Shown here one piece after another: positions 2,762-40,606 of a DNA stretch of 64,000 nt. How positions within the stretch are numbered: position 1 is the stretch's first letter; every line of letters begins with the position of its first letter. The DNA lies in IMG/VR virus record IMGVR_UViG_3300003877_000001, positions 186,001 through 250,000 of that record; one strand, given 5' to 3'. Under the pieces are notes generated by a model. That model was not told the origin of the DNA. It saw nothing but the letters and a program-made list of their open reading frames with translations, and did no database searches. Made by a program: the position numbers and the translations under genes.

Positions 2762-3289
2762 ATGGAAAGATTTAATAAAATTTATGAAAATAACCATAGG
2801 ATAGTCTTAGGTTATGTTGCTCAAAAGCTAAATGATTATACATTAGCAGAAGAAATAACCAATGATGTATTCATTAAACTTAGCAAATGTTTAGATTCAT
2901 TCAATGAAGATAAAGCCTCTATGCGAACATGGATCATGACCTTTGCAAAAAATGCTGTTATTGACCAATATAGAAAACGTAATTTGAAAACAATATCTTT
3001 AAATAAAGATTCTGTGGATGGGGAAAACAAATCAATGACCTTGGAGAATAGGATTGTATGTGATATACCAACACCTTACGAAGCATTGAGTTCAAAAGAA
3101 ACTATGTTCAACTTAGATAATGCAATTGCAAATCTAAGTAAGACGGATTTCGATGTTGCTTATTATTTCTTTAAAGAAGAGTTATCTTACGAAGAAATAT
3201 CTAAAACAATGAATATTTCATTAGGTACTGTAAAAGGTAAAATATCGAGAGCAAGAAAATCATTACAAGCTAAATTAGTACACATATAA
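2762..3289 (+). CDS. ECF-type RNA polymerase sigma-70 factor
   Basis: Region 2 (AEEITNDVFIKL...SMRTWIMTFAKNAVIDQYRK) and region 4 HTH (LSYEEISKTMNISLGTVKGKISRARK). Confidence 0.93.
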   Translation: MERFNKIYENNHRIVLGYVAQKLNDYTLAEEITNDVFIKLSKCLDSFNEDKASMRTWIMTFAKNAVIDQYRKRNLKTISLNKDSVDGENKSMTLENRIVCDIPTPYEALSSKETMFNLDNAIANLSKTDFDVAYYFFKEELSYEEISKTMNISLGTVKGKISRARKSLQAKLVHI

Positions 3290-3554: not shown

Positions 3555-3830
3555 ATGTCAAATATCCTTTTTATATTTGTAGTACACAAAAACAAAAACA
3601 TTATGTCTAATAAAAGAACAATAGTAGAATCGGAAGAAGGTAAGAATCTATTACTCCATGCAGTTATCAATCAGTTAGAAACCGATTTTGATGATAATGA
3701 GTTTGATGCAATAGATGAACTCATTACTAAGCTAATGGAGAACATGGATAATCATGAGATACTTTATAATTATCTTAGTGATTCAGCACAACAAAACTGG
3801 ATGGAAGGTAAAACAACTATAAGATTTTAA
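3555..3830 (+). CDS. Hypothetical protein (real start probably 3603)
   Basis: ORF; promoter TATATTTG 3572 and leader lie inside the annotated 5' end. Confidence 0.65.
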   Translation: MSNILFIFVVHKNKNIMSNKRTIVESEEGKNLLLHAVINQLETDFDDNEFDAIDELITKLMENMDNHEILYNYLSDSAQQNWMEGKTTIRF

Positions 3831-3840
3831 TTAAAAAATT

Positions 3841-4089
3841 ATGGAATTTTATAAAACAACTGAAAAACTTTCTGATATTGTACAACCAAGTCAAGTTGTA
3901 TATGTTCCTGAAAATGCAGAAGATAATGATGATGTATTCTCAAAGCAAGATTTTCTTGATTTATGTAAAGGTGATAAATATATTGCACAAATCGTTTTAG
4001 ACCTTTGTGAATGGCAATCGCCTTATACTGTTATTGATGAATTGATAAGAGAAGAAGAGTTTGAAGAAAATCAATTTAATTTATTTTAA
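3841..4089 (+). CDS. Hypothetical protein
   Basis: ORF with A-rich leader. Confidence 0.65.
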   Translation: MEFYKTTEKLSDIVQPSQVVYVPENAEDNDDVFSKQDFLDLCKGDKYIAQIVLDLCEWQSPYTVIDELIREEEFEENQFNLF

Positions 4090-4243
4090 ATTAAAAATCA
4101 TGGATTTATTTGATAACCCCGAAGCATTATCTAACAATGTCCAAGATGTTCTTATGCATTTGAGGATGAACTTAATAATTTAGTACAAACTTAGAAGGCT
4201 TATTTGCTATATTTAGTGTTAGGCTTTCGTTAATTTTTGAAAT

Positions 4244-4465
4244 ATGGAAATAGATAAATCAAAACAAATTAAATCATTATTTGAAACTTATTTTGATGGT
4301 TGTTACGGAGTAGATGCACAACCAAACACTTCTAATACTTATGAAATGGGTATTTGTAAATTAGATTATGATGAAAAATCTAATATGTTAGATGTGCATT
4401 TACGTAGACCCGGATTGCTAATAGGTGAAGCAGGCTTTATAATAAATAAAGAATTGAATAAATAA
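4244..4465 (+). CDS. Small protein with KH-like motif
   Basis: VHLRRPGLLIG resembles the type II KH motif of ribosomal protein S3. Confidence 0.45.
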   Translation: MEIDKSKQIKSLFETYFDGCYGVDAQPNTSNTYEMGICKLDYDEKSNMLDVHLRRPGLLIGEAGFIINKELNK

Positions 4466-4519
4466 GAAAATGGATTTAATAAATAAGAAAATGGATTTAA
4501 TAAATAAGAAAATGGATTT
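4457..4519 (+). repeat. Perfect 21-bp tandem repeat x3 spanning a stop/start junction
   Basis: (AATAAATAAGAAAATGGATTT)x3. Confidence 0.95.
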
Positions 4520-4736
4520 AAATACTATTATTGAAAAATACGAAAAATCAGACCCAAAGATGGATTTTCTGTTATGGTTCACTCAAAATTACAAATCTAT
4601 CAAAGAAACACAAACTAAGGCATTAAATATAGCCGATGTTAGCAAATCGTTTACTGCGGAAGAAGTAGGAAATATGTTAGCAACAAAGTTTAGTACGATA
4701 GAAGAAGCAATACACTATTTTGATACAATAGATTAG
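4470..4736 (+). CDS. Hypothetical protein
   Basis: ORF; N-terminus MDLINKK repeated. Confidence 0.6.
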   Translation: MDLINKKMDLINKKMDLNTIIEKYEKSDPKMDFLLWFTQNYKSIKETQTKALNIADVSKSFTAEEVGNMLATKFSTIEEAIHYFDTID

Positions 4737-4795
4737 CAGTATATATTTGCTAACGTTGAGTGTAAACACAGTTTAATAACGATTAAATAAAACAG

Positions 4796-5047
4796 ATGAC
4801 AGATAAAGATATAAAAAAGCAATACATTAAAGAGTTTGGGTATAGTTCTTTTAATAAATACAATAATACGGACTATTCTAAATGGTTAGAATGCCAATTG
4901 ATTTCAGCACTAAATGAAGTTATTAAATTGGGTTTACATAGTGTTAGCCAACGAAGTGAACTGGTTTGCGAACACAATTATGTTTATAAAATATTGTATG
5001 ACCATACAGCAGCAGACGTTTGTACTAAATGTGGAAACATTAATTGA
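4796..5047 (+). CDS. Hypothetical protein with C-terminal Cys/His motif
   Basis: CEH...CTKCG. Confidence 0.6.
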   Translation: MTDKDIKKQYIKEFGYSSFNKYNNTDYSKWLECQLISALNEVIKLGLHSVSQRSELVCEHNYVYKILYDHTAADVCTKCGNIN

Positions 5048-5399
5048 TATGAAATTTGAAGTAGATTGTAAAAGTAAAATAAAATCATTTTCTATAATTA
5101 CTAAAAAAATGGAAATGATAATTAGATATTGGGGTGGATTAAATTTTGATATTGTGAGAGCATATAATACACCTAACCCTAATGCCACATAACGGATAGC
5201 AATATGAATAGTAAAATTACGATTTATTAAATTAAAACTTATATAAAATGACAAATGTAGAAAAATTAACACAGTTAGGAATAATAGGCGATGTTAGACA
5301 ATGCTTGGGTGCAGATGATGAAAATGACACATCAGTAGATGATAGAATAAATACAATGAGTAATTCAGGCTTAGTTAAGGCTTGATATAAAGAATTTAT

Positions 5400-5427
5400 G
5401 TAACCTTTAGGGTGTCCTAAACGTATA
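5400..5427 (+). promoter_or_regulatory. Phage ECF-type promoter GTAACC-N16-CGTATA with palindromic spacer; further + copies at 5957, 7806 (palindrome) and 6456, 10255, 11527 (no palindrome)
   Basis: GTAACC TTTAGGGTGTCCTAAA CGTATA upstream of a gene start; motif recurs about 19 times in correct orientation. Confidence 0.8.
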
Positions 5428-5481
5428 ACTAAAAGAATAATATTGAAACAAGTAAAAATAAATTTTTAAGGCATTAAAATT

Positions 5482-5967
5482 ATGGGATATACACATTATT
5501 GGACTTCGAAAGTAGTAAGCGAAGATAAGTTTAAAAAGTTTGCAGCTACTTGTAAGAAATTATATAAAGCATTACCAGATACTAGCGAAACTGCTAGTGG
5601 TTGTTATTCAGATGATGAAATAGTAATTTGTGGTGGTAATGGGAAAGGAAAACCATTGTTCAGAAATGATGAAGTTTGGTTTAACGGAGATGATAAAAGA
5701 GGTCTTGAAGCTTTTTGTATCGAACTAGAGGATAAAGATTATAATTCTTGTAAAACAGAAAGAAAACCCTATGACTTACTAGTTGTAGCCTGCTTAATTG
5801 CAGCACATGAAATTTTAGGGTATGAAATTACAAGTGATGGAGATTTTGAAGATTGGAAACTAGCAATAAATTATTATCTTCGTACATTATATACTAAGAT
5901 GCCAAACGATGAAGCAATTAAATTAATTTTACCAGAATTCATATATAAAGAATATTGTAACCTTTAG
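5482..5967 (+). CDS. Conserved hypothetical phage protein
   Basis: MGYTHYW start, CKTERKPYD motif. Confidence 0.75.
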   Translation: MGYTHYWTSKVVSEDKFKKFAATCKKLYKALPDTSETASGCYSDDEIVICGGNGKGKPLFRNDEVWFNGDDKRGLEAFCIELEDKDYNSCKTERKPYDLLVVACLIAAHEILGYEITSDGDFEDWKLAINYYLRTLYTKMPNDEAIKLILPEFIYKEYCNL

Positions 5968-6014
5968 GATGTCCTAAACGTATAAGTAAAAAACAAAGAC
6001 TAAAAGAAATTATT

Positions 6015-6308
6015 ATGGAACTAAAACATATTATTGATTATCGTTCTATTCACAATATTCTGATAGAGCCAATGAATCAAAAGGAATTAGCTGACAATGT
6101 ACGTAAAGATGGTAGTGTTCAAGCTAAAGTTCTAGTATCATTTGAAAGTATTCTAGCAAATAATATTGATGACTTAAATGATGACGTATCCGAAAAGATT
6201 ACTGGCTCTATCTCAGGATTAACAGATATCAGCTATTCAGTTGCAGGTAGAACAACTAATAACGAATTAATTCTGAAAGTAACAGGAGTACCTGAACTGG
6301 AAGACTAA
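6015..6308 (+). CDS. Hypothetical protein
   Basis: ORF after promoter 5957. Confidence 0.7.
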   Translation: MELKHIIDYRSIHNILIEPMNQKELADNVRKDGSVQAKVLVSFESILANNIDDLNDDVSEKITGSISGLTDISYSVAGRTTNNELILKVTGVPELED

Positions 6309-6414
6309 CAATGTCCAGCTTGACTAGCTGGTAAAATATTTAAGAATACTTTTCTAGGGGAAGGACTAATCAATGTCCATTCGTAGTACCCTAAGAATTG
6401 TTTTTGTTTAAAAT

Positions 6415-6445
6415 CGGGGGAGAGGTGTCTCCCCCATATTTTTTT
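6415..6445 (+). terminator. Intrinsic terminator-like hairpin
   Basis: GGGGAGA-GGTG-TCTCCCC followed by T-rich tract. Confidence 0.6.
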
Positions 6446-7877: not shown

Positions 7878-10196
7878 ATGAAATTAGAAAAACAATTAAA
7901 TTCGAAAAACATTCAGTCAACTGGTACAGTTACTGCAATGAAATTAGATGAAGATGCTCACTCAACTATCTTCGAAATTTTTACTAGTGGTTTATACTCC
8001 GATCCTATTGGTAGTATCATTAGGGAAATAACATCAAACTGTTTTGACTCACATGTTGAAGCAGGTAAAGACAATCCTAAAAATCCTGTTGTTGTTAAGT
8101 TAACCAATGAGGTTTCAGGCACGTTCATATCTTTTATAGATAAAGGTGTAGGAATGTCTCCCGATAGAGTACACAACATCTATGGTACTTACTTCAAATC
8201 AACTAAGAACCAAACAAACGATCAAATTGGTGGTTTCGGTTTAGGTGGTAAAACTCCATTAGCTTATACTGATAGTTTCTTTCTTATCACACGTTTCGAA
8301 GGTGTAGAATACATCTACAATATCTTTATGGGCAATGATAGTCCAATGGTAGAATTGATGTCGCAGGAAACCACTAAGAAAGTTAATGGTAGTGAAGTAA
8401 AGATACTTATTAAACCTAACGACCTTACAGCTTTTGAAAAGAAAACATTACGTCAATTGTACTACTTCGAAAACATAGTGTTTGAAGGTTTTTCAGATTA
8501 TTATGTAACCAATGATTATACAATTGCCAAAGGTGATACATTTCTTTATAGAGGTGATACATACTCTAGAAGTATGCACGTTTGTTTAGGTAAAGTAGCC
8601 TATCCTATAAACTTTGAAGCACTGGATGTTGAAGAGTCTGATTATAACTTACCTGTTGCTATTAACATTGAAATTGGTGAGTTAGACAATGGTGGTGTAA
8701 CACGTTCAAGAGAAGAACTTAAATACACTGATAAGAATAAGAAGATCATCATAAACAAGATGAAAGCTGTTAAAGCAGAGTTGATGGAATTATTGTCTAA
8801 ACAACTTGACAATGTACAAACCATGCAAGACTATTATAAGGTTATAGATAATCTTGGTGAACTTCGTCTTGGTGATAAGGTATTGAATGTTGATAGCATA
8901 GATAAAAACGATGTTGTCTTTCCTAACTTCAAATACAATGATTTGAAGATGCCTAAGATAGGTGACTTGGTTACTACTTTCTACAACAAGAAAATGTTTG
9001 GTAAGAAAGAAAGTACTAGGTATGGTTATGGAAATTACAAAGGTACTTTTGAATCAATGAATGAAAAAGATAACGTATATTTTGTTGATGGTGAATTTAA
9101 AAGAGTTGTTTTAAAGCAATCATATTTACAATGGAAAAGTGATAGATTTTTTCTTCATACTCCAATTGAATTTACTGAAACTGGTATGGCTATCCTAAAG
9201 AAAGAACTAGGATTAACTACTTCTAAAGAAATTCCTTTTACTAAGAAGCAAATAGCAGCTAAAGAAAAAGCTAAAAAGAAAGCAGAAGATAAGGGTGAAT
9301 TTTACGTGATGGGTGATTTGTTTAATATAAGAACCATTAATGTAATTCCTAAAGCCAAAGGTGAGAAGTTAATTGCTGACTTACAAAAAGATGTTCATGC
9401 CTTAATGGTTAAACATGCTAAGAACTACGATGATTTAGTAGTACCTGATGATTACATTGCTCTTAGAAAGCAGAATAGAATGTCCGCAACTGTTCTTAAA
9501 ACTGGTATTCCTGTTAAAGATAAAGGTTACTACGGTTACAGAACCAAATTGAAGATGGAAGATTTTGTTAATCACAATGGTAAAATCTACTACGGTTTTG
9601 CAGATGATAGTTACGCACTTGAAAATGGAAGTAGTATTTTCGATGAAATTAGTGGTAGTGAAAACAAATCTAAAATAAATAGATATGGTGATAATGATAC
9701 TAAAGGTACAATGTTCATTCAAATATCTAAAGGTAATGAGAAGTACTTAAAGATGCTTGGTAAGAAAGCTGTACACATTAATTACTTCTACCAAACTTAT
9801 GTATCACGTAAAATTGATATGATTGTACAAAACAAAACCTATGCAAAAGCAGAAGAATTGTTTAATGAGAATGTACTGGGTGTTTTTAATAAAAGTATCT
9901 TTAAACAAATTGATGAAGATATTTACTCTATGGCTTGTAAAGTTAATGATAGTCTTGAAAGTCATAAGGTGTTCCACTACATTAGTACAAGTACAATACT
10001 GAACAAACTTAAAATTGATTTAGATGATGTACAGGTGGAGTTCAAACATAAAGAAGAACTTGAAAAACTAACTAAGATTAGTAATGGTTGTAGAGATAGA
10101 CTGAAATGGATTAGTTTTCCTTGGGAATTAAATCCTGAAACAGAAAATGCTGATAAAGAATTAATTGAGATGGTGAATTTGTGTATCGACAAGTAA
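7878..10196 (+). CDS. rIIA: RIIA-like protein (N-terminal GHKL/HATPase domain)
   Basis: LYSDPIGSIIREITSNCFDSH, DKGVGMS, STK..TNDQIGGFGLGGK; adjacent to an rIIB-like gene. Confidence 0.85.
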   Translation: MKLEKQLNSKNIQSTGTVTAMKLDEDAHSTIFEIFTSGLYSDPIGSIIREITSNCFDSHVEAGKDNPKNPVVVKLTNEVSGTFISFIDKGVGMSPDRVHNIYGTYFKSTKNQTNDQIGGFGLGGKTPLAYTDSFFLITRFEGVEYIYNIFMGNDSPMVELMSQETTKKVNGSEVKILIKPNDLTAFEKKTLRQLYYFENIVFEGFSDYYVTNDYTIAKGDTFLYRGDTYSRSMHVCLGKVAYPINFEALDVEESDYNLPVAINIEIGELDNGGVTRSREELKYTDKNKKIIINKMKAVKAELMELLSKQLDNVQTMQDYYKVIDNLGELRLGDKVLNVDSIDKNDVVFPNFKYNDLKMPKIGDLVTTFYNKKMFGKKESTRYGYGNYKGTFESMNEKDNVYFVDGEFKRVVLKQSYLQWKSDRFFLHTPIEFTETGMAILKKELGLTTSKEIPFTKKQIAAKEKAKKKAEDKGEFYVMGDLFNIRTINVIPKAKGEKLIADLQKDVHALMVKHAKNYDDLVVPDDYIALRKQNRMSATVLKTGIPVKDKGYYGYRTKLKMEDFVNHNGKIYYGFADDSYALENGSSIFDEISGSENKSKINRYGDNDTKGTMFIQISKGNEKYLKMLGKKAVHINYFYQTYVSRKIDMIVQNKTYAKAEELFNENVLGVFNKSIFKQIDEDIYSMACKVNDSLESHKVFHYISTSTILNKLKIDLDDVQVEFKHKEELEKLTKISNGCRDRLKWISFPWELNPETENADKELIEMVNLCIDK

Positions 10197-10309: not shown

Positions 10310-11497
10310 ATGAATTTAATATTTGGAAACAAAGTTGGAACTAAAGTTAATCTGTTTATTAACGGTACACTTCATTCCAAAGAGTGTGGCACTGATGAAG
10401 GTGCTAATGTGTTCTTCAAAGAAATACTTAAAGTAAAAGCTGATCCTACTGATGAAAATGTAGATGGTCTTTATGTATTATTAAATAAGAATATTCGCAT
10501 TGCGAAAATGGCTGGTTTTGAATATGATGTTAAAACTGGTGAAACGTTCATGGATGGATTTAATACTCCTGTTCCTGAATTGCTTGTTGAAACTATTAAG
10601 GATTACCTAGATAATAACTTTCCAATTGAAAGTATTACTAACTTTTGGAAGCTGTTAATGGCTAATCCTGATCATAGAGTTAGAGAAGATTTATTTAAGT
10701 TCATTGCAACTCATGACTTCTCATTAACCGAGAAAGGTTATATGATTGTCTATAAGACTGTTGATTACATGAACATGAATACCAACGATGTTGCTTCATT
10801 CGTTTCTAATGCTTACCTGAAAGTACGTAAGGATTGGGGAACTTCTGCAAGTAAATATGTTGTGTATAAAAACTTCACAGAAGAAATTGGTGAAGATTTT
10901 GAATTAAAACTTACAAAGAAAGTTACCTTTAACAAATGGGATGTTGAAGCTAAAGGAGTAAAGTTAGTGGGCAACTTGAATGATCTACAAAAGAACCTTG
11001 ACAATTTGATAGAAGATAATAGTTCAGTCTTTACTGATCTACATACTCATAAGATGGAGATTAAACTTGGTGAACCTGTTAAGTTCGAAAGAACTGAATG
11101 TGATTCTGATCCTACAATTGATTGTTCTTATGGTTTGCATGTTGGTGCAACTAATTATGTACAGAGATTTGCTAATAGTGATTCAGTTGTACTTGTTTGC
11201 TTGGTTAATCCAATGAATGTAATGGCTGTACCACAATACGACCATAGTAAAATGAGAGTATGTGAGTACTACCCATTTGCACTTGCAACCTTTGAAGATC
11301 GTAAGATTGATATTATCGAGCAGAAATTCTTCGAGTACGATTATGTATCTCATGAAGAAGAAGAATTGAAACTGTTACTTGCTTCGAAAGAAGAAGATGT
11401 AAGAGAACGTTCTTATAATGCTCCCGAAGATGAAAGGGATTATGACGAGTACTTGACCATCCTAGAAGCTAGAGTTATTGATCTAGCAGGTGAATAG
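10310..11497 (+). CDS. rIIB: RIIB-like protein
   Basis: NFWKLLMANPD, DLFKFI...LTEKGYMIVYK, CSYGLHVG, VNPMNVMAVP..KMRVCEY. Confidence 0.88.
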   Translation: MNLIFGNKVGTKVNLFINGTLHSKECGTDEGANVFFKEILKVKADPTDENVDGLYVLLNKNIRIAKMAGFEYDVKTGETFMDGFNTPVPELLVETIKDYLDNNFPIESITNFWKLLMANPDHRVREDLFKFIATHDFSLTEKGYMIVYKTVDYMNMNTNDVASFVSNAYLKVRKDWGTSASKYVVYKNFTEEIGEDFELKLTKKVTFNKWDVEAKGVKLVGNLNDLQKNLDNLIEDNSSVFTDLHTHKMEIKLGEPVKFERTECDSDPTIDCSYGLHVGATNYVQRFANSDSVVLVCLVNPMNVMAVPQYDHSKMRVCEYYPFALATFEDRKIDIIEQKFFEYDYVSHEEEELKLLLASKEEDVRERSYNAPEDERDYDEYLTILEARVIDLAGE

Positions 11498-40194: not shown

Positions 40195-40240
40195 CTTTCG
40201 TTATTTTTGTCCGTAAATTAACTATTTATATACCTATTCG

Positions 40241-40606
40241 TTATACATCATTTAAAGAACCTCTTGTTTCCACCCAAAAAGTAACGTATTCATAATCACT
40301 TTTTTGTTTATCTTCTATTGGCAAATTATTATCTTCTCTATATTTGTAATAATCATATTTTTCTCTAATCATACGTTGTCTTTCAAGTTCCTTTTCTCTA
40401 TAAAACGCTTTTTGTTGAAAATCCATTAACCTTTTCATTCCATCACCATTGATGAACTCATCATATAGTTCTACCATTCTTTTTGATGATTTTCGTGTAA
40501 AAAAACGCTGTATAACACCACCAATAAATAATGGCTGTTTAATGCTTGATTCGGTAGTATGTGTGTTTTTATTTAGTTCTGTCATAATTTTAAATTTTAA
40601 TTTCAT
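40241..40606 (-). CDS. Hypothetical protein
   Basis: ORF; stop lies in TAAC motif. Confidence 0.6.
   Translation of the reverse strand: MKLKFKIMTELNKNTHTTESSIKQPLFIGGVIQRFFTRKSSKRMVELYDEFINGDGMKRLMDFQQKAFYREKELERQRMIREKYDYYKYREDNNLPIEDKQKSDYEYVTFWVETRGSLNDV

Follow-up and report, generated by a model that had tools for sequence, protein, structure and literature searches.

The region analyzed here is a 64,000-nucleotide window covering positions 186001 to 250000 of the 325,854-bp IMG/VR phage record IMGVR_UViG_3300003877_000001, which has a GC content of about 28% and whose DNA is present in a hydrothermal-vent metagenome. The features of interest lie in a plus-strand block of small genes, downstream of a phage-encoded ECF-type sigma factor (Sigma70_r2 plus r4_2; 2762-3289) and upstream of a 772-aa protein (7878-10196) that is 30% identical to rIIA of T4-like Klebsiella phages over its first 355 residues. 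The open reading frame (ORF) following rIIA (10310-11497; 395 aa) may be rIIB, although this was not tested. Within this block, the stretch from 3830 to 5385 is a replaceable island of small early genes between the conserved ORFs 3555-3830 and 5482-5967, as a related 11.7-kb contig in a sister sample matches 3569-3829 and 5385-6444 but holds 872 nt of other DNA in between. The island contains ORF 4470 (4470-4736; 88 aa), ORF 4796 (4796-5047; 83 aa), a 47-aa ORF (5049-5192) and ORF 5248 (5248-5385; 45 aa). At the start of ORF 4470, three tandem 21-bp units (4448-4521) encode MDLINKK repeats; the contigs of the source sample break at this point and two tiny contigs at double depth bridge the gap, so that the copy number in the assembly is uncertain. 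The small ORFs have no usable Pfam or PHROG match and are not paralogs of one another or of anything else in the genome. A megablast search of the phage collection returned no close relatives of the phage, and a search of IMG/VR with rIIA as an anchor found nothing.

The initial annotation described a cluster of attC-like boxes at this locus and proposed that several ORFs are fusions across a crossover site. Its observation is confirmed, in that every sequence statement holds. GTTAGCAAAT (4638-4647) and ATTTGCTAAC (4745-4754) form a perfect inverted pair, and TAAC-GTTGAG-TGTAAAC (4751-4767) faces GTTTACA-TAGT-GTTA (4932-4946), with a pairing that extends to 4761-4780 and 4919-4938 (18 of 20 positions). 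An ORF (5049/4914..5192) stops at the TAA inside CACATAAC, the box GATGTTAG occurs at 4635 and 5290, and the four similar junction peptides (IADVSKS, LHSVSQR, IGDVRQC and IGGVIQR) are present, the last on the minus strand at 40525-40505. Taken alone, however, these features are at chance level. We counted 91 perfect 10-mer inverted pairs within 10 to 200 nt in the window against 64 +- 11 in simulations, and 14 against 11.4 when at least 3 G/C were required; GATGTTAG occurs 5 times against 2.1 expected; folding of 4630-4762 or 4745-4950 as single-stranded DNA gave z values between -1.0 and -1.2; and the loose peptide pattern occurs at the background rate (24 in 144 k residues). Significance comes only from comparison with other sequences, which shows that most of the features are real.

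The last 33 codons of ORF 4470, its stop codon TAG (4734-4736) and its 3' tail constitute a module, here referred to as M1 (4637-4755), that recurs at 74 to 92% DNA identity in at least 9 unrelated contexts (L009, L010, L012, L013, L014, L015/21, L019, L022 and L023, where L numbers denote related loci recovered in our searches). Most local alignments start at 4637 or 4644, although a few run up to 35 nt upstream, to 4612-4629, into the shared junction, and they end between 4725 and 4761, mostly at 4748. Similarity thus usually begins at T/GTT and ends at or a few bases short of AAC/G, where the slash marks the joint. Six protein homologs of ORF 4470 share only the C-terminal 33 residues (VSKSFTAEEVG..HYFDT) and have unalignable N-halves. 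A search of 1.84 billion cluster representatives with the C-module alone found 20 proteins, 18 of which are 74 to 88 aa long with the module at the C terminus, whereas none was found in 185 k prokaryote genomes. Substitutions inside M1 appear to fall mostly at third codon positions, as judged by eye from the alignments and not tabulated, and hence the segment looks translated and under purifying selection. An AF2 model of ORF 4470 of low confidence (pLDDT 64) suggests only that the joint lies in a linker and that the C-module forms two helices (pLDDT of about 80). One M1-bearing gene, in L009 (JGI Ga0164313_10011957), sits at the end of a contig whose other genes look bacterial (sulfatase, sigma-70, NAD-binding), and may mark a prophage edge or a chimeric contig.

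The 10-bp inverted pair is the outer part of a 19-bp stem that encloses M1. The left arm (T/GTTAGCAAATCGTTTACTGC; 4637-4657) is read in frame as Val-Ser-Lys-Ser-Phe-Thr-Ala, and the right arm (GCAGTATATATTTGCTAAC/G; 4736-4755) ends at the cassette joint AAC/GTT at 4754/4755. In detail, T-GTTAGCAAA-(T)-CGT-(T)-TACTGC pairs with GCAGTA-(T)-ATA-TTTGCTAAC-G. Over ten M1 copies, 96.8% of cells are paired and four pairs are changed on both sides, including A-U to G-C, G-C to U-A and C-G to G-U, and one in the inner helix; 0 of 500 shuffles reached this score, and slid controls gave 19 to 52% paired. The arm alleles AGCAAA/TTTGCT, GTGAAA/TTTTAC and GTAAAA/TTTAC covary. The window's own copy does not fold better than shuffles. 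Three G.U positions within M1 suggest folding of the sense strand, and a G.T excess was also seen in a biased scan, but an unbiased scan gave 12 G.T against 12 A.C, and this is therefore only suggestive. A further outer helix (TTATACA/TGTATAA) was rejected, since there was no consistent diagonal over 27 modules and only the closing T.G pair was found, at 90%. No Rfam family matched in the window or in 9 related loci.

Upstream of the left arm lies a junction motif (4602-4637; consensus aagcAATTa..TATAca.ngT, encoding [KQ]-L-x-[IL]-x-x before Val), which together with the left arm is about 84 to 89% identical over 50 to 57 nt to the same region of other cassettes (L010:383-432 and L023). Over 28 modules, the consensus is aagcAATTa..TATAca.ngT/GTT-N3-aaaTCGTTTa on the left and Ta.ATGttT..yAAC/G on the right. 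AATCGTT is kept even when the reading frame differs (L004 compared with M1), so the conservation is at the nucleotide level, while the GTT is always read as a Val codon, which explains the similar peptides. Unrelated cargos carry the same design with their own complementary arms, among them the modules designated M1b and x1 to x8, a 170-nt module in L010 and L014 that has either arm allele and a covarying inner helix, and the C-halves of three homologs of ORF 4796 (P0002 to P0004); several others enclose a whole small ORF whose ATG follows the left arm. In L025:770-972, one protein carries an M1-like module followed, in the same hairpin, by a Cys-rich module like the C-half of ORF 4796 (..QLVCDDNELDCPYEF..CCCK); two C-modules have been stacked. 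"Empty" 29-nt hairpins, made of the two arms with only CGTTTAAATG between them, occur at L026:2235-2263 and L030:2725-2753, one of them directly after a full-length ORF 5248 homolog. As the empty hairpin starts GTTG and ends CAAC, CRISPR-repeat mimicry was considered, but the pattern had no match in 185 k prokaryote genomes and only 1 in IMG/VR, and the idea was dropped. In 73 kb of related loci, we found 22 hairpins with an in-frame stop in the arm against 1.2 +- 0.8 simulated, a figure that is inflated because the loci were ascertained through M1.

ORF 4796 is a true mosaic. Its leader and N-half form module M2 (4755-4946), which ends in the junction VIKLGLHS/V, and its Cys/His-rich C-half belongs to module M3 (4942-5043), which begins with the left arm T/GTTAGCCAAC. 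The homologs P0002 to P0004 share residues 1 to 53, ending LGLHSVS, and have three different Cys-rich C-halves, whereas P0005 and P0006 share the C-half (CEHN..YKILYDHTAADVCTKCG) and have other N-halves. At the DNA level, L004, L007 and L008 are 88 to 92% identical to the window from a point between 4735 and 4755, which in L004 and L008 is just after TTGCTAAC, while L007 also shares the end of M1. Identity ends at 4946-4948 (..ATAGTGTTAG), where it switches from about 92% to random at the GTGTTAG box. L005/L006 match only from about 4952 to 5037, contig L004 begins exactly at GTTGAG, and a separate contig in a sister sample (X2, record 12) covers only 4942-5043. Residues 4 to 41 (4796-4920) are also 47% identical to the N terminus of a 106-aa protein of the cultured jumbo phage Tenacibaculum phage PTm1 (ORF-182; L003), whose remainder is unrelated, and which is thus another partner for this N-module. 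M3 has lost its right arm in this genome, while an M3-like module at L010:1789-1912 keeps both arms. In the place where relatives carry the right arm, the 47-aa ORF (5049-5192) starts 1 nt after the stop of ORF 4796; it has no homolog or family match, and only a 37-nt similarity to another contig of the source sample.

Two of the boxes listed in the initial annotation fail. GCCACATAAC (5184-5193) complements the left arm at 4943 in only 5 of 10 positions and is not an arm. For the GATGTTAG box at 5290-5297, end-to-end conservation of homologs across the box had been set out in advance as the outcome that would count against a crossover site, and this is what we observed for ORF 5248: it is a truncated copy of a 72-aa family with 21 homologs that are conserved end to end across IGDVRQ, and a homolog reads GAT GTA CGC at this point, so that the box reflects peptide conservation only and is not a DNA site. 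The window's copy is truncated at codon 45, exactly at the right border of the island. Sigma genes homologous to the one upstream of the island sit next to the ORF 5248 homologs in L027 to L029. In contrast, the 40.5-kb site marks a second complete hairpin cassette on the minus strand (40240-40606), comprising ORF 40241-40606 with the junction KQPLFIGG/V, a left arm GTTATACAGC from 40516 and a right arm GATGTATAAC that ends at 40240 with the stop codon TAA inside it, for a span of 277 nt. This ORF has no homolog in the phage collection. A strict scan found only these two complete hairpins in the 326-kb genome, against 0.8 expected, so nothing shows activity in this phage, and neither TGCTAAC nor AGCAA..TTGCT is enriched as a genome-wide repeat or promoter.

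The junction plus left arm also matches Baltic Flavobacterium siphoviruses. In hemulen6-1, the hairpin T/GTTAGCAAATCGTTG ... CAATGTTTGCTAAC/G encloses the whole of gene gp018. Relatives that are about 99% identical differ at one site: mumin6-1 reads ..CTTATAAC/GTATGTGG.. and is empty, hemulen has a 469-nt insert that starts with GTT and ends with AAC, and lillamy9-1 has a different, 720-nt, four-gene insert that also runs from GTT to AAC. The joints lie in a TAACGT repeat, at TAAC/GT. Stinky9-1 has a further cassette bounded by an 81-nt direct repeat of right arm plus leader plus GC-rich stem-loop, and every gene end examined there reads ..TTTNNNAAC/GT. The paper describing these phages does not mention hairpins, inverted repeats, cassettes or integrases (PMC7077304). 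Profile searches for tyrosine and serine recombinases or resolvases, Y1 transposases and reverse transcriptases (PF00589, PF00239, PF01797 and PF00078) returned no match in the genome under study, while the control genomes were positive (14 of 14 for PF00589), and no integrase was found in hemulen, mumin or lillamy.

Taken together, the interpretation given in the initial annotation is partly supported. ORFs 4470 and 4796 are fusions across a conserved joint, as it predicted, and the reassortment of N- and C-halves that it had named as the check is seen in both gene families, but the attC/integron label is not supported. We consider it somewhat more likely than not that the boxes are the two ends of a conserved long-range hairpin that defines exchangeable units in small early genes of phages of Flavobacteriia-like hosts, with the grammar T/GTT-N7-(C)GTTTA ... 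cargo ... TAAATG-N7'-AAC/G. The seven inner bases vary between cassettes but stay complementary, the stop codon of the gene lies in the right arm, the cargo is the C-terminal domain of the gene or, in other phages, a whole small gene, and whole gene cassettes abut at AAC/GTT. In this window, ORF 4470 is a unique N-half plus the imported module M1, and ORF 4796 is N-module M2 plus C-module M3. We think that the arms are regulatory sequence. The 3' end of M1 contains a candidate promoter for ORF 4796 (4719-4749), consisting of TTTG (4719-4722), 19 nt and TATATTTG (4742-4749), with the cassette joint where transcription would start; this arrangement, read by eye, resembles the Bacteroidota TTTG/TAnnTTTG consensus, a fit that was not tested, and also scores as sigma-70-like (TTGATA-16-TATATT). 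The right arm overlaps this candidate promoter's -7 box and start site for the next gene, and in the Flavobacterium phages it is followed by a GC-rich stem-loop. Many otherwise unrelated genes share the arms and the junction before them (20 to 80 nt), and phage recombination, or copy-choice at the stem base during coinfection, would therefore swap cassettes there, with the in-frame crossover in the left arm producing chimeric proteins. While the modules, their borders, the covariation of the arms and the natural empty and filled alleles are demonstrated by our data, the regulatory role and a homology- or structure-guided recombination without a dedicated recombinase are deduced from them. No RNA data set contains this DNA, so that promoter, terminator and RNA roles are untested, and the TAnnTTTG reading fits M1 and a few other cassettes but not all right arms. 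In addition, plain homologous recombination does not explain why the two borders of a module are complementary to each other, which has to be attributed to a separate function of the stem. Translational bypass of the T4 gene 60 type was rejected because the loop looks translated and under selection and the codon after AAC is not always GTT.

It is possible, though in our view unlikely, that the elements form a structure-specific cassette system related in logic to integron attC recombination, in which a host- or phage-encoded enzyme recognizes the folded hairpin and cuts and joins at the stem base (T/GTT and AAC/G). This would better explain the pairing of the two borders, and is in line with the constancy of only the GTT and AAC triplets in otherwise covarying arms, the location of both M1 borders at or within about 10 nt of the stem base in at least 9 contexts, the GTT...AAC inserts at TAAC/GT, where the crossover ambiguity resembles that at G/TT, the empty 29-nt hairpins, and the assembly breaks that fall on the joints (the start of L004 and X2 record 12 at 4942). 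However, no tyrosine or serine recombinase or HUH enzyme was found in this genome or in the Flavobacterium phages, the polarity is mirrored relative to attC, the loop is coding, there is no attI or Pc equivalent, and in the isolates 6-nt to 81-nt direct repeats flank the indels, which ordinary recombination or slippage can use. If this reading is nevertheless true, phages of Flavobacteriia carry a previously undescribed, integrase-independent cassette system, a mirror-image analogue of attC that moves whole genes between AAC/GTT joints, swaps C-terminal domains in frame at the in-ORF arm and builds chimeric early proteins, and it would be a new class of structure-guided cassette exchange outside integrons. 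Less likely still is a selfish miniature palindromic element (MITE-like, similar to the Rickettsia palindromic elements) that inserts in frame and adds a peptide tail. M1 is about 117 bp with terminal inverted repeats, lies in frame and is found in many unrelated genes, and in-frame palindromic elements in coding genes are known (reviewed in PMC10969869). However, there is one copy per genome rather than many, no target-site duplication (the flanks are T and G), the inner arm bases differ between cassettes, which does not fit one transposase binding site, the peptide appears to be under purifying selection, the module lies at the C terminus in the short proteins noted above, and none was found in the prokaryote genomes searched. 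An invertible segment of the shufflon or Gin-Cin type is very unlikely: although the arms are inverted repeats at an N/C joint inside the ORF and the reverse complement of M1 reads open for 27 codons from the box (minus-strand ORF 4677-4769), no invertase is encoded, the spans (117, 170, 124, 112, 157, 160, 277 nt and others) do not keep to multiples of three, substitutions in M1 appear to fit only the forward frame, and no inverted form is seen in the contigs of the source sample. A diversity-generating retroelement does not fit, as there is neither a reverse transcriptase nor a second copy of M1 in the genome, and chance repeats in AT-rich DNA plus ordinary domain conservation, although consistent with the single-genome statistics, are contradicted by the arm covariation, the enrichment in related loci, the coincidence of module borders with the arms and the allelic indels at the joints.

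This work provides a concrete, sequence-defined joint at which small early phage genes, the "ORFan" pool that includes many host-takeover and antidefense candidates, are exchanged. Half-genes are exchanged there too, so that new two-domain proteins arise by a single crossover. Since the same joints occur in cultured Flavobacterium phage/host pairs, which already show empty, filled and replaced alleles, mechanism and function can be tested directly at the bench.

The elements most resemble the promoter-early stem-loop cassettes (PeSLs) of T4-type phages (Arbiol et al. 2010, PMC2839356; Comeau et al. 2014, PMC4122927), in which short conserved regulatory repeats with a stem-loop flank small, nonessential early genes in hyperplastic regions, and recombination between them inserts, deletes and replaces genes between close relatives without a dedicated recombinase. 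The phage described here is T4-like at least in encoding rIIA, and the mumin, hemulen, lillamy and stinky alleles, bounded by TAAC/GT and by the 81-nt repeat, as well as the replaced island 3830-5385, agree with this arrangement. In contrast to PeSLs, one arm of the stem lies inside the coding sequence, up to 350 nt from its partner, so that the loop is the cargo and crossovers at that arm make in-frame protein chimeras, the arms vary and covary rather than being one repeated sequence, the two hairpins in this genome are not the many copies of one motif expected of PeSLs, and the hosts are of the Bacteroidota type. Similar to integron gene cassettes, cassettes abut at an AAC/GTT joint, only those triplets are invariant while the rest of the imperfect palindrome keeps its structure rather than its sequence, loop length is variable, and empty and filled alleles occur. 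However, there is no IntI, attI or Pc; instead of the attC polarity 5'-RYYYAAC...GTTRRRY-3', with AAC and GTT at the inner end of the R box, the hairpins read 5'-GTT...AAC-3' with the triplets outermost; the hairpin encloses the gene or gene half instead of lying between genes; and the elements are found in lytic-type phage genomes. Rickettsia palindromic elements and bacterial MITEs (PMC10969869) likewise include a palindromic element of about 100 to 150 bp that is translated in frame as part of host proteins, but the present module is single copy per genome, is C-terminal and carries the stop codon, encodes a conserved peptide and shows no target duplication. Finally, in polymorphic toxins (the CdiA VENN and Rhs PxxxxDPxGL joints), a short conserved peptide and DNA motif also marks the point where variable C-terminal modules are exchanged in frame, whereas the proteins described here are phage early proteins of 75 to 130 aa and of unknown function, their joint is tied to a hairpin, and their N-halves vary as much as their C-halves.
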